Shown piece after piece: positions 24,001 to 30,985 of a stretch of 64,000 bases of DNA. Below the pieces are notes generated by a model, which ran no database searches, was not told the origin of the DNA, and saw nothing but the letters and a program-made list of their open reading frames with translations. Both the position numbers and the translations under genes were made by a program. The DNA lies in contig NC_047062.1 of NCBI RefSeq assembly GCF_902459465.1, positions 29,698,001-29,762,000 on the forward strand, in the 5' to 3' direction. Position 1 is the first letter of the stretch; every line of letters starts with the position of its first letter. Source of the DNA: Asterias rubens (lineage: Eukaryota).

Positions 24001-25081
24001 GTGGCTGGCTGTTGTAGGCGCCCTGGCATGCCAGCAGCTTGAACACGTTGTAGTAGCAGCATCCTTCGCAATTGAGCTTCTCAGCTGCAAGGAAGGATGA
24101 TTTAATAATAGCCTGCTAAGTTATTATTATTGTTATTTTATTTCAACAGATGCTGTGGTCTCCCAAAGCTCCATCAGAGAGTTGCTTAGAAACCCAAGGG
24201 CCACATCCACTGCCGTTTCTACAACCGGTCTGATCATGGACATCGCCGGAAGGAACCCAGATGCAGAGGAGGAGAATGACATCATGAGAAGGTCAATGGA
24301 AGAGGATGCATCCAGAGTACAGAATGGCATCGGCAATGGTTACAGTGAGCCAGCCGAGGGTCTTGGGTATGGTGCTTATCCAGACAGACCCTCTAGTAGA
24401 AATGGCGACAGGAAGCAGATGGTGACTGAGAAGCTATGGGAGGCTTCTTCAGCACCTCGACATTCCCTGCAGTCGCCACAGCCTCCAGCGTCCACCAAGA
24501 GAGTCTCAGATAAGCAGGCCTCGAGGCAAGCGGCCTCTAGCTTATCACTTAGAAGCTTTACAAATAGCACTGACTTTGGTGCTAGCTCGCCAGAACAAGT
24601 AACTCTTAGAAGTACCCTTCGGAGCACAGTTCCTGAAGCGTCGACATCTAAGAATCCAAGGAGGTCCATGGAATCACCTGAGCTCTCCACCACATCCTTA
24701 AGGAATTCTTCCATGAGATTCAGCTTAGAAGAATCCAATTCCCCACAGCCTCCGTCGTCAAGACAAACAAACCGCAGCGGGAGGTCTCGGAAGGCTAAGC
24801 AGCAAGCCCAGTCAAGTCTGGATTCCAGGATCACCTCCTCGATACGAACTGACTCACAGGCCTCAACCAACACGCTGGTTTCATCATCAGACTTTGAGTA
24901 TGAGGATGATGACGAGGTGTCTAACCAGCTGTTGACCCGGTCAATTGAGGTCAAAGATCAAAGGTCACAGGAAGCTGGTTTTACTAAAGCTTCAAGTATT
25001 CAGCAAAGTGTCACAAGAGGCATCGCCCGATTTGAGACGAAAGAGTTTGATAAAGAGAGATTTAGTCCTCCACTGGTCTGA
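15058..25081 (+). CDS. FSIP1: Fibrous sheath-interacting protein 1 homolog, 853 aa, 12 coding exons
   Basis: join(15058..15243,15598..15682,16081..16277,16840..16993,17433..17546,18595..18764,19745..19849,20304..20462,21221..21358,22835..22999,23662..23818,24150..25081). All GT-AG, phases consistent, 2562 nt. Blocks match vertebrate FSIP1 as I recall it: MDITKGNLDEISRPAS, KMQQLDRILAKR..EKEVK, ENTCRFLAL, NDFIQRNIDLA, DEKKRLEELL, LQDIDNKL, GEKILRDAK. Confidence 0.9.
17721..18082. mobile_element. MITE with ~33-bp TIR and 8-bp TSD (P- or hAT-superfamily)
   Basis: CACTAAAT-[CATAGAGCTATATATATTGACTAGAACGCTAAC ... GTTAGCGCTCTAGTCAATATATATAGCTCTATG]-CACTAAAT. Confidence 0.85.
19275..19697 (-). mobile_element. 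tRNA-derived SINE, near full length; relatives at ~18195-18400 (-) and 44295-44597 (-)
   Basis: Head GTGGCCGAGC..GTTAAG (A box) and GGGTTCGAATCC (B box), central GTGTCCTTAAGCAAGACACTTAAC, (TAT)n tail. Confidence 0.75.
20489..20731. mobile_element. PIF/Harbinger-like MITE, 3-bp TSD
   Basis: cat-GGGCCAATTTCATAGAGCTGCTTAAGCA ... TGCTTAAGCAGCTCTATGAAATTGGCCC-cat. Confidence 0.8.
21499..21800. mobile_element. ~140-bp foldback MITE family (interrupted copy); other copies at ~32980-33120 and ~48006-48145
   Basis: Arms GGCAGCAGAC(T/A)TACC(G/A)GGTAAAT / ATTTACCCGGTA(A/T)GTCTGCTGCC shared by three loci. Confidence 0.75.
21596..21745. mobile_element. ISL2EU-like MITE (AT TSD) nested in a foldback MITE
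   Basis: AT-[AGACCTTATCGCAAATACC ... GGTATTTGCGAAAAGGTCT]-AT. Confidence 0.75.
23588..23631 (-). ncRNA. Minimal type I hammerhead ribozyme-like motif (Penelope/retrozyme-type) in FSIP1 intron 10
   Basis: Minus strand reads GTCTC CTGATGA T GACTAG agtaag CTAGTC GAA ACAT T GAGAC: perfect 5-bp helix I, 6-bp helix II and conserved core. Confidence 0.65.
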
Positions 25082-27024: not shown

Positions 27025-27760
27025 GAATTTATCTTCCAGTCTTACTTGCAGCGCGCAAAATTTAAAACCTCAGAGCGTTAGTTCACGCGCACAAAGTTTA
27101 GAATGTAATTTTTGCACTGTCCGTATACGGAGCGTGACAAAATGACATTTCACAATACGCACTGTGTAATAAAAACAGAGGAAGTAGGATATAAAACAGA
27201 GGTCGTAGCATATATGTTTTTATCCCCTAGTAGTTTGAGCTTCTGATTGGTGGATTAGCGCGTACTGGAAGATAAACATATATATATAGCTGTCAATTAC
27301 TGATGGACGTCTCAAAGCACTTCCAACATTACTAACCCTGGTCACATGTTTGTATTTTAACTTGCCTAAAGCCTATTCACGCCTATAGTGTTAAGTAAGT
27401 CAGCACTTATAAATATAAAGTGAAATAGGTACTTTTCTCCTCAAATACACTATATCATGCCTATGTTTATTGCAACATCAAGATTGCGTGACCAAATAAT
27501 AAGAATAAACCATGCATTTTCAAATTCCACTGTTTACAGAACAGCGAGATCCACTTTTCTTTCACTAATTGCAAGTCACATCCGTTTACTTTCAACTCAT
27601 ATTTCACTTTCAATTCCCTCAGAGTTTCTGTTTGCCGTGACAATGTTCTTTTAATGGCCTTTAAGTATAAATAGAAAAGAATGAGACTAGTGTTACTTTC
27701 ATTAGCACTGTGCGAAGCTGTAGTTACTGAGCTGGGTTGAAATCCCGATCTACTTACTGC

Positions 27761-28058
27761 AACATTTCTCCTGAAGACAATCTGATCATACTGAACGAAA
27801 CATTGAGTTGTCAACCAACAGCTCTTTTCAGAATCAACACTACTCAAAAGAGATTTTCTCAAAATATCTCCTGAAGACCATCATAGCATACTGATCGAAA
27901 CATTGAGTTGTCAACCATTGGCTCTTTTCAGAACCAACACCACTCAAAAGAGATTTTTTCAAAATTTCTCCTGAAGACCATCATAGCATACTGATCGAAA
28001 CATTGAGTTGTCAACCAACAGCTCTTTTCAGAACCAACACTACTCAAAAGAGATTTTC
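27761..28058 (+). repeat. Three tandem 100-bp units, each with a degenerate hammerhead core
   Basis: CTC CTGAAGA ... CGAAACATTGAG begins at 27768, 27868 and 27968 (exact 100-bp period). Confidence 0.85.
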
Positions 28059-28165: not shown

Positions 28166-30758
28166 ATGGCAGAGGTAATGTTCGGAGTACAATCATCTGA
28201 AAACACGGATACTTCACCGGTACCCTCAAGTCAATTGGCTGATAAGGAGGATGAAGACTGGTACCCAAGGAAGATTCAGCCCTTGCCACGCTCACTTGTC
28301 ATAACCCTCTGCATTTTGGGTTTATGGCGACCCAGGAGGGATGCCACCAGAAAACGGAGGGCAAGTAGTCAAGAATGGCCATCATGCCCCCAGCCATTAT
28401 GCCCCCAGGAAGCAGCACACTTCCAGGCTGGTCGAACCAGGACAAACTCCACCACTGAACTTATTGGCTACCCACCAAGTGCCACGAACAACAACTACGG
28501 AGCGACAGAAACTCTCCATGGGGTGTCGAGCTGTAGTACAACAACTGTTGAAACCGATGACAAATTAGGCTTGGATCACATGCACTGCAACATATGCAGA
28601 GATGAATTTGGAAATGAGCTGAGCCACGAGTCATCAGGTTTGTCACCTTTATTTTGTTTCACCCATTTTACCCCCACAAGAGTTAATAAAAAAATACTAT
28701 TCACTTTAAGGCACTGGACACTATTGATATTTACTCAAAATAATTGTCAGCATAAAAACTTACTTGGTTAACGAGCAATGGAGAGCTGTTGAAAATAAAA
28801 ACATTGCAAGAAACGGCTCCCTCTGAAGTAATGTAGTTTTTGAGAAAGAAACAATTTCTCATTAAAATATTTGAATTGGAGTTCCATGACCTCAGCTAGC
28901 TGAGATCTCGAACTCAAGCATTTGAAAGCTCACAACTTGTGAGACAAGGGTGTTTTTTTCTTCCATTATTCTCTCACAACTGAGTTTAAATTTTCACGTG
29001 TTTTTTTTTGTATGCATATGTTGAGATACACCAAGTAAGAAGACTGATCTTTGACAATTACCAAAGGTGTCCATAGTGCCCTTAACTACTTACGTAGATA
29101 CCATTAGTATTCATAATAATAATAATAGTGGCTGTTTATAAAGCGATTATGTCCCTCACTCAGTGACACTCAAGGTGCTTCAATATCCAGTTTTTTCCTG
29201 CAAGATATGTGGGACTACTTTTGAGTTATGTTATGAGACGTCCTTTTACACAGCACTATGTACAGATTTACAAGGTGATGTGGCGCAATATGCTGCCAGT
29301 CTAGTAATCTGAATTAAGTCTAGTGTTATTTTGAAATTTAAGATTTTCGGCAGTTGAACTCGGTGTACAGTTCTTGGTGTTTAAGGTTTAAAATAAGTTC
29401 TTCTACGTTCCCCACTCTCCACGGGTGGATTTAGGACTAGTCTCTAGGAGAAACTAAAAGCTTAAGTCTAGTCCTAAGGATGAGTTAGCGATAAGACTAG
29501 TCTTAACTCTTTGTGAAATCCAACCCAGAGTTAGACTAGTCTTATCTCCAGTTAGGACGAGTTACTTGTCCTAACTAAACTCTTAGGATTAGTCCCAAGT
29601 TAGGACCATCTTTGTGAAACCGACCCCTGGACCCCACAAATTGACTGTTTCCATCCTGAACTATTCCTCTCACTGTCTTCATTTCCAGCGGCAAAGACCA
29701 AGTTCTACCTTGTGCGAATGTTGATGCTCCTTTATCTGGTCAGCATGTCTGGATTAATGCTGTATGACTTTGTCATCTACTGTAAGTTCGGCTGGGGTAA
29801 ACGTGCGAGCACACTACTCCTAGTGTCATACTTCACCTATCTCTTCCAGGTCTTTGTGGTTCCAATATTTGGTCTGCTATCGGAACTCATGACCTTCCTT
29901 CAGACGGGGTCAAACTCCAGTGGTATATGGGCTGCTCTACAAACGAACTACATCTTAGAAAGAATTCAATACCTCAGAGGGAATTGTGTCCTATCCTGTG
30001 TGACCTGTGGACTGTTTCTGATCTGGCCGACAGGTAACGGCGTGTTGAGAATCATCTATGACTATGTCTATCGCCCGAATGGAGATGCTCATGCTAATAT
30101 AAGCCTCTGGTGTGCCCTTGTGTCCTACATCATGTATGGCTTCTTTTGCTTTCTCATTTACATCGAACGCAAGTCCTTCCAGAGTGAGTTCCGCGTGGTG
30201 GCACACTTTGTGGCGAGTAAGGCACCGAAGGGAATGCTTTTCATCGACTTGTGTAGGGACCATTTATCGGCAGTCTACCAGCGATTCCGCGTGATGCGGG
30301 ATTTCGTCGGGATCTGGATGGCGTTCACAATGGCTGTAGCGACTTGGGGCATCACAGCTCACCTCACTTGGAACTATGTCATCTTCACATATTGTGACGT
30401 CAGCCACGACAGTGACAATGTCGGACTACCTTTACTCAACGTGCTCATCTGGTCACAGAAAATCATGTTCTTTGTTCTGCCTTCACTGGCTGTAGGTGGG
30501 TTGAATATTGACTATGTGTGGAGGGAGTTCAGGTATATGATGGTGAGACATCAACGCCACTGTTACTCCGTCTTCTGGTCTCACATCAAGACACATATGG
30601 GGGATATCAATCTCTTCGCTAAAGGGTTGAGGGCTACTCTACTCTTCTCTGCGTTAGGGTTGTTTCTGGGTCTGGAACTGAGCAATGAATCGCAGAATGT
30701 AGCCTTTTGGAATGGACCTGGGGAGTACAACCTGACTGTTTTCTGTACACATCAGTGA
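28166..30758 (+). CDS. Uncharacterised multi-pass membrane protein, 513 aa, 2 exons; candidate gustatory receptor-like (7TMIC) protein
   Basis: join(28166..28637,29689..30758). Phase-1 junction G|gtttgt ... ttccag|CG is in frame with the 348-aa ORF. About 7 hydrophobic helices plus an N-terminal amphipathic LCILGLW segment; no signal peptide. The gene model is well supported; the family call is inference. Confidence 0.8.
28706..29085. mobile_element. Kolobok-like MITE copy in the intron of the 7-TM gene
   Basis: TTAAGGCACTGGACACTATTG ... CCAAAGGTGTCCATAGTGCCCTTAA. Confidence 0.8.
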
Positions 30759-30783
30759 TGTGGATGGTACGTTAATTACAAAA

Positions 30784-30985
30784 CTGGTTGGGGTAAGGCT
30801 GGGTTGGGGCAAGCCGCTAATGATCTGCCGCAATACTGGTTGGGGCAAGGCTGGGTTGGAGCAAGGCGTTAATGATCTGCCACAGTGAGATAATCGAGAC
30901 GTGGTGGTGGCATAATGAATCAGGTTTCCGCGATCGAATACTGCTCTCGCAAGATCGCTGCTCTCGCAAGATCGCTGCTCTCGTC
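30784..30985. repeat. 52-bp duplication and 17-bp tandem repeat downstream of the 7-TM gene
   Basis: CTGGTTGGGG..AAGGCTGGGTTGG at 30784 and 30836; CTGCTCTCGCAAGATCG x2.5 at ~30942-30983. Confidence 0.7.

Follow-up and report, generated by a model that had tools for sequence, protein, structure and literature searches.

A starfish protein with a predicted Or/Gr-like fold from an unnamed multi-copy family found so far only in Ambulacraria

A two-exon gene of the starfish Asterias rubens encodes a seven-helix protein whose fold, as modelled here, is very probably that of insect Or/Gr proteins. We consider the protein likely to belong to the 7TMIC superfamily (Or/Gr/GRL/DUF3537-like, Class A), and its sequence relatives form an unnamed multi-copy clade that has been found so far only in Ambulacraria. 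Membership of the animal GRLs in the narrow sense (Pfam 7tm_7, PF08395) was not found. To our knowledge, insect-type chemoreceptor channels have long been thought absent or nearly absent from deuterostomes, for which the record consists of a few sequence-recognisable GRLs together with GrlHz and PHTF.

The coding parts of the gene are supplied by two forward-strand open reading frames, at 28166-28771 and 29712-30758 of the window (the whole stretch of DNA that was analysed, 64,000 nucleotides (nt), to which all positions refer). After splicing, 28166-28637 and 29689-30758 join into a coding sequence of 1542 nt, or 513 amino acids (aa) and a stop codon, with the following parts:

28166-28637, forward strand: exon 1, with 157 codons plus 1 nt for the predicted cytoplasmic N-terminal region and a phase-1 donor at its end
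28378-28408, forward strand: 15-bp in-frame tandem duplication in the disordered insert of exon 1, from TRF and protein comparison
28638-29688, forward strand: GT..AG intron, full of highly repeated interspersed elements
29689-30758, forward strand: exon 2, the whole 7-TM domain and the stop codon (30756-30758)

An earlier note on this DNA had proposed a 513-aa two-exon gene, and that model stands. Both splice sites are canonical, with a donor CAG/GTTTGT at 28637/28638 and an acceptor TTTCCAG/CG at 29688/29689 that combines a polypyrimidine tract with CAG. The protein reads ...SHESS-A-AKTKFY across the junction, which is identical in the annotated Asterias amurensis protein P0001 (508 aa), and the exon/intron structure is matched in that species. 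Exon 1 and exon 2 are 96.9% and 97.7% identical, respectively, to the A. amurensis locus (L001), and P0001 is 97% identical to the exon-2 protein; about half of the intron (581 nt) can be aligned, at 91.6% identity. With 16 synonymous and 9 non-synonymous differences in exon 2, dN/dS relative to A. amurensis is 0.15, and the gene is under purifying selection. This ratio, together with exons that are 97-98% identical against 92% for the intron, leads us to regard the gene as real and constrained. The difference between 513 and 508 aa is explained by the duplication at 28378-28408, which adds 5 residues; it also makes a second Cys (SCPQPLCPQ) that is missing in A. amurensis.

The structural evidence comes from an AlphaFold2 model of the exon-2 TM domain, built with an alignment (A3) of 64 homologs, that reached a pLDDT of 88.3 and a pTM of 0.87. 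It replaced a first run on 8 orthologs, which was weak (pLDDT 54) and whose matches pointed the same way, weakly. In a Foldseek search of the PDB, 18 of the 22 best matches were Or/Gr structures, whose probabilities were 0.85-1.00 and whose highest TM-score was 0.54; the remaining 4 of the 22 had probabilities of at most 0.23. The E-values of these matches were weak (5.7e-3 or worse) and the TM-scores were around 0.5, but the structural match spans all seven helices and lies far above background. Against Swiss-Prot, the 30 best matches were all Gr/Or, egl-47 or LITE-1. Among AFDB clusters, sea-cucumber members of the family itself matched best (TM-score about 0.8) and Gr and Or clusters came next, and two cluster representatives named ‘Gustatory receptor’ matched the model at TM-scores of 0.68-0.85; a fold search of the ESM Atlas returned TM-scores of about 0.3 only, which is noise. 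The comparison by AlphaFold and Foldseek that the earlier note had proposed thus returned best matches of the Or/Gr type in both the PDB and Swiss-Prot.

Hydropathy analysis finds seven hydrophobic segments, all within exon 2, and the model has seven membrane helices, the number that the earlier note had counted. They are arranged as follows:

29694-29897, forward strand: TM1 (exon-2 residues 2-34) and TM2 (38-69), from the model and hydropathy
29997-30071, forward strand: TM3 (exon-2 residues 103-127), from the model and hydropathy
30087-30392, forward strand: TM4 (exon-2 residues 133-180) and TM5 (182-234), long helices, from the model and conservation
30423-30548, forward strand: TM6 (exon-2 residues 245-268), GG-N kink (G269, G270) and cytosolic helix (274-286) with W277 and F280, from the model and conservation
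30558-30677, forward strand: TM7a (exon-2 residues 290-306, cytosolic) and TM7b (313-329, in the membrane, the putative pore helix), from the model and conservation
30678-30755, forward strand: predicted extracellular C-tail containing two sequons (NES, NLT) as well as the conserved residues Q335 and W340

Long TM4 and TM5, an anchor domain and a TM7 split into TM7a and TM7b are the criteria of the Or/Gr tertiary fold, and the model has all of them. TM4 and TM5 span 48 and 53 aa, and their cytosolic extensions would build the putative anchor domain; DYVWREFRYMMVR comes after the GG kink of TM6. The earlier note had read long TM4 and TM5 helices, a TM6 continuing into DYVWREFRYMMVR and a split TM7 from the sequence, and the model reproduces all three. 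The predicted intracellular loops (IL1 about 35-37 aa, IL2 53 aa, IL3 47 aa) are longer than the extracellular ones (EL1 8 aa, EL2 11 aa, EL3 15 aa), which is a criterion for 7TMICs; in the model and by hydropathy the extracellular loop between TM1 and TM2 is a very short WGK.

The N-terminus is predicted to be intracellular and the C-terminus extracellular, on the statistics of charge and sequons, in agreement with the N-in/C-out topology proposed earlier. In this protein, 19 Lys and Arg residues lie inside and 3 outside; across 64 members, Lys and Arg amount to 15.0 per 100 residues inside versus 8.4 outside. Sequons (N-x-S/T) show the opposite bias, with 2.30 per 100 residues predicted outside versus 0.42 inside, a 5.5-fold enrichment outside, and 43 of the 64 members carry one in the C-tail. 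The sequons listed in the earlier note, NIS in the TM3-TM4 loop and NES and NLT in the C-tail, are all present, but the list omitted two others, NST in the N-terminal insert and NSS in the TM2-TM3 loop, which would be cytosolic. As also stated there, the protein has no hydrophobic N-terminal signal segment and neither a DRY nor an NPxxY motif.

Despite the fold, the family is not connected to known receptors by sequence. The earlier note had proposed a search for a relationship to 7tm_7 or Trehalose_recp. In Pfam neither of these nor 7tm_6 was matched, and reciprocal searches recovered no Gr. Pfam searches of the starfish protein (TM domain and exon 1) at E-values up to 10 returned nothing credible, and none of 64 trimmed members and 8 further full-length proteins was matched at E up to 1. 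Profiles run against all PDB chain sequences retrieved only designed helical bundles at E above 0.1, and three large protein searches recovered the family itself and nothing else. Attempts to reach canonical GRLs, starting from the most remote members (P0161 and P0138) or by a permissive profile search, likewise yielded family members only. The only sequence-derived pointer to 7tm_7 is a protein-language-model comparison, in which the nearest clusters were 7tm_7/Gr, GUR-like and DUF3537, with scores of 0.93-0.96, those of 7tm_7 and DUF3537 being 0.95-0.96. In UniRef and the AlphaFold DB, three sea-cucumber entries automatically bear the name ‘Gustatory receptor’. Among these, P0161, so named in UniRef, aligns with the family profile over its full length (hhalign E of 4e-50) and has no 7tm_7 match in Pfam. 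Because no sequence method links the family to Or, Gr or GRL proteins, the case for homology rather than convergence rests on the fold and the language-model features.

Conservation within the family is concentrated in particular parts of the domain. The most conserved positions (exon-2 numbering) are R160 in the cytosolic part of TM4, which is nearly invariant, G269/G270, W277 and F280 in the link between TM6 and TM7a, and W296 in TM7a; W227 and Y229 in TM5 and Q335 just outside TM7b are further conserved positions. The cytosolic helix with W277 and F280 is the most conserved stretch, and TM6 and TM7b are the best conserved helices. In a study of the superfamily (bioRxiv 10.1101/2023.08.30.555482), the 7TMIC conservation pattern is described as comprising the anchor domain, TM5-TM6 and the pore helix, and the pattern in this family matches that description.

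The earlier designation of the protein as a GRL-like channel holds with respect to the 7TMIC fold but fails in three other respects, namely the lack of a 7tm_7 match, a TM7 motif present at two of four positions, and the absence of 3′ introns. The GRL TM7 motif is given as (T/S)Yhhhhh(Q/K/E)(F/L/M) in PMC7746228. The starfish TM7b, T316-L-LFSAL-G323-L324, agrees at 2 of its 4 positions, and the family consensus is (T/S)-h-hhhhh-(G/S)-(L/V/F/I); in the distant member P0138 the motif starts with SY. The stretch from TM1 to the stop codon is a single exon (29689-30758) and lacks the 3′ introns that are conserved in animal GRL genes. The echinoderm and hemichordate GRLs SpurGRL1 and SkowGRL1 (Robertson 2015 and Saina 2015, cited after PMC7746228) come from the same phyla and share the superfamily fold. 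The sequence of SpurGRL1, however, identifies it as a Gr relative, and its TM7 reads TFYAIISEF, a Y-to-F variant, in contrast to T-L-hhhhh-G-L here; whereas animal GRL genes share the conserved 3′ introns, the present family has a single-exon TM domain and lacks detectable sequence similarity to them.

Compared with insect Or/Gr proteins, the family lacks a Pfam 7tm_6 or 7tm_7 match, has an incomplete TM7 motif and has been found in deuterostomes only, and the starfish protein has very short extracellular loops and an insert of about 100 aa between TM0 and TM1. Identity to Orco (6C70), MhOR5 (7LIC), AgamOR28 (8V3D), BmGr9 (8VC2) and DmGr43a (8JM9) is 5-10% by VIA-align and 9-14% by Foldseek. 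The cryptic Grl proteins of Drosophila (Benton & Himmel 2023, PMC9998090) are fly-restricted and probably derived from fly Grs, whereas the present clade predates the echinoderm-hemichordate split and differs from them also in its N-terminal Cys-containing insert. GrlHz and PHTF are 7TMIC branches that, like this family, occur in deuterostomes. PHTF (Class B 7TMIC) has a long TM2-TM3 loop, and since IL1 is short here (about 35 aa), the protein is not PHTF-like, and we rejected this assignment. GrlHz is conserved across Holozoa, whereas the named members of the present family are all from echinoderms or hemichordates; its restriction to Ambulacraria, judged from 30 clusters looked up of 142, argues against an assignment to GrlHz.

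Ahead of the TM domain, exon 1 encodes two conserved elements:

28292-28327, forward strand: SLVITLCILGLW, candidate re-entrant TM0 helix (residues 43-54), conserved in echinoderm and hemichordate members
28586-28597, forward strand: CNIC, membrane-proximal CxxC, surviving half of the family CxxC...CxxC module, from the alignment

In Orco, the corresponding N-terminal region is the re-entrant loop TM0. We infer from sequence conservation that the N-terminal helix of the present family is likewise a re-entrant TM0; SLVITLCILGLW itself does not score as a TM helix, being too short and not hydrophobic enough, and the family motif at this site is [KR]xWP-hh..L.hLG[LIY][FWY]. The aligned N-termini of 28 members share a common plan, in which the candidate TM0 motif is followed about 10 residues on by a CxxC, then by an acidic variable linker and a second CxxC, which precedes [ST]-L-W-W-[ND], then ...IG..W and TM1. 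TM0 and TM1 are separated by as few as 3 aa (Ptychodera P0112) and as many as about 113 aa. The N-terminal motifs given for SpurGRL1 (…MAFFGLWHG) and SkowGRL1 (…MAILGLYRQ) in the supplement of PMC7746228 end in GLW and GLY, resembling the LG[LIY][FWY] of the present family.

The CxxC that the earlier note had pointed out as HCNICR is found at residues 140-144 (HCNIC). The insert of about 100 aa, described there as unusual, does lie between the N-terminal helix and TM1, but it is not peculiar to this gene; as far as the alignments tell, a Cys-containing insert between TM0 and TM1 is a family-level variant feature. Many paralogs have both CxxC pairs, the starfish orthogroup has lost the first and kept HCNIC, and the urchin orthologs have lost both. 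A Pfam search with ten N-terminal Cys-rich modules returned nothing credible. Two CxxC pairs could possibly form a four-cysteine zinc or metal site. A larger proposal, which we put forward tentatively and think rather unlikely as a whole, is that an ancient and expanded ambulacrarian clade of Or/Gr-fold channels was missed by GRL sequence surveys, that it ancestrally carried a cytosolic CxxC...CxxC-x-[ST]-L-W-W-[ND] metal-binding module between TM0 and TM1, and that this gene is a derived member from which half of the module has been lost. If true, the module would equip these proteins with a regulatory element of their own, sensitive to zinc or redox state, such as is not known from any 7TMIC.

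The protein is not the orphan that it had first been taken for, as it has orthologs in Patiria (60% identity), Acanthaster (58%) and sea urchins (about 40%) and a large family of paralogs. With an E-value limit of 0.001, a profile search of 1.84 billion representative proteins retrieved 142 clusters, and 49 of these reached 1e-30 or lower. We checked the species of 30 clusters spread over the whole ranking, and all species-named members among them were either echinoderm (Asterias, Acanthaster, Lytechinus, Diadema, Apostichopus, Holothuria and the crinoid Anneissia) or hemichordate (Ptychodera and Glandiceps). A quick maximum-likelihood tree groups the gene with other starfish sequences in an orthogroup that has good support and sits within a clade of 16 members. 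The named members of that clade are all echinoderm and several are unnamed; hemichordate sequences are in the other main clade. The family is therefore older than the echinoderm-hemichordate split, and it comprises several paralog lineages.

Other clades of the family may form tandem clusters, to judge from adjacent locus tags and accessions in Apostichopus, Holothuria and Lytechinus. A search of the 64-kb window found no paralog, and the gene is single-copy there. In Apostichopus japonicus, P0072/P0153 (722 aa) have two TM0 motifs and five CxxC ahead of a single TM domain and look like fusions with the N-terminal exon of a neighbouring paralog. Papers and supplements searched for ortholog accessions and sea-cucumber members yielded nothing; the gene lists of Robertson 2015 and Saina 2015 may include members of the clade.

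The surroundings of the gene are rich in repeats. Between 28649 and 29611 the intron is crowded with very high-copy interspersed repeats, with many partial joints, and its summed contig word depth reaches about 10^5-10^6 in all four sequencing runs mapped to the locus, whereas the exons have about 0-35. Within the intron, a joint to the opposite strand at 29492/29533 sits among GTTAGGAC...GTCCTAAC palindromic units with a MITE-like look. Upstream, at 27760-28058, three 100-bp units with 90% matches stand in tandem; the array ends about 110 nt before the ATG, and its units are also high-copy in the sequencing runs. A 52-bp unit present twice (30779-30881) follows immediately downstream of the stop codon, with a perfect 17-bp unit repeated 2.5 times (30941-30983) farther on; the 3′ flank is length-polymorphic, because one run has a 16-nt deletion at 30845. 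In A. amurensis (locus L001, 1-305 and 3238-14260), the gene lies downstream of FSIP1 within the span of a minus-strand gene (418-aa product) and appears to be nested in an antisense intron. A 308-aa GC-rich open reading frame at 24155-25081 of the window has no Pfam match.

Could the gene be decaying or mis-predicted, for example as two unrelated reading frames joined by chance? The repeat-packed intron would suit such an explanation, as would the RNA record: no contig crossing the splice junction was found among the four runs, of which the three with the best coverage look genomic, with contigs that continue over the exon-intron borders, and one possible RNA run has a single 174-nt contig inside exon 2. 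The low dN/dS, the canonical splice sites and the joint conservation of exons 1 and 2, including the TM0 motif of exon 1, in A. amurensis, Patiria, Acanthaster and sea urchin proteins make this explanation highly improbable. A G-protein-coupled receptor, or another unrelated multi-pass family such as a transporter or a PAQR-like protein, would account for seven helices and for the few GPCR chains that occur far down the Foldseek list, yet we consider it even less probable. Looking for a rhodopsin-like GPCR, we found neither an N-out topology nor DRY/NPxxY motifs nor a GPCR fold; the earlier note had named a GPCR fold, an N-out topology and a helix number other than seven as outcomes that would speak against its reading, and none of them was seen.

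The alternative that bears most directly on function is an Or/Gr-like fold without ligand-gated channel activity, in some other or structural role, or a fold acquired by convergence. It is consistent with the lack of a sequence-level link to Or/Gr and with the incomplete TM7 gate motif, and unlike typical chemoreceptors, which lie in fast-evolving tandem arrays, this gene has been kept as an ortholog in both starfish and urchins; moreover, the authors of PMC9998090 state that a different biological activity of PHTF or GrlHz cannot be excluded. Against it stands the concentration of conservation in the anchor region and TM7b, the tetramer- and pore-building parts of Ors, and the extent of the structural match over all seven helices. 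We therefore regard this alternative as unlikely, and the most likely reading, by analogy, would be a subunit of a tetrameric, ligand-gated cation channel of the Or/Gr type.

On the pattern of Orco, MhOR5 and BmGr9, four subunits would assemble through the anchor domain, TM7b would line a central cation pore, and a ligand bound in the extracellular half of TM1-TM6 would open it. The disordered insert of about 100 aa between TM0 and TM1 would then act as a cytosolic regulatory appendage, with two CxxC pairs and a plausible zinc site in many paralogs and the second pair only in this orthogroup. We give the putative channel function about an even chance. A putative chemosensory role is more doubtful and rather unlikely; this gene is a conserved ortholog and not a member of a tandem array.

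Echinoderm and hemichordate GRLs and the structure-first finding of cryptic 7TMICs have already been published, and the advance made here is incremental. As a separate ambulacrarian group of at least 142 sequence clusters, the family would enlarge the deuterostome repertoire of such proteins. It would offer marine chemical ecology new candidate receptors for cues such as those to starfish prey, spawning or settlement, and its N-terminal Cys-rich insert would be a natural variant for probing the influence of TM0 on gating.
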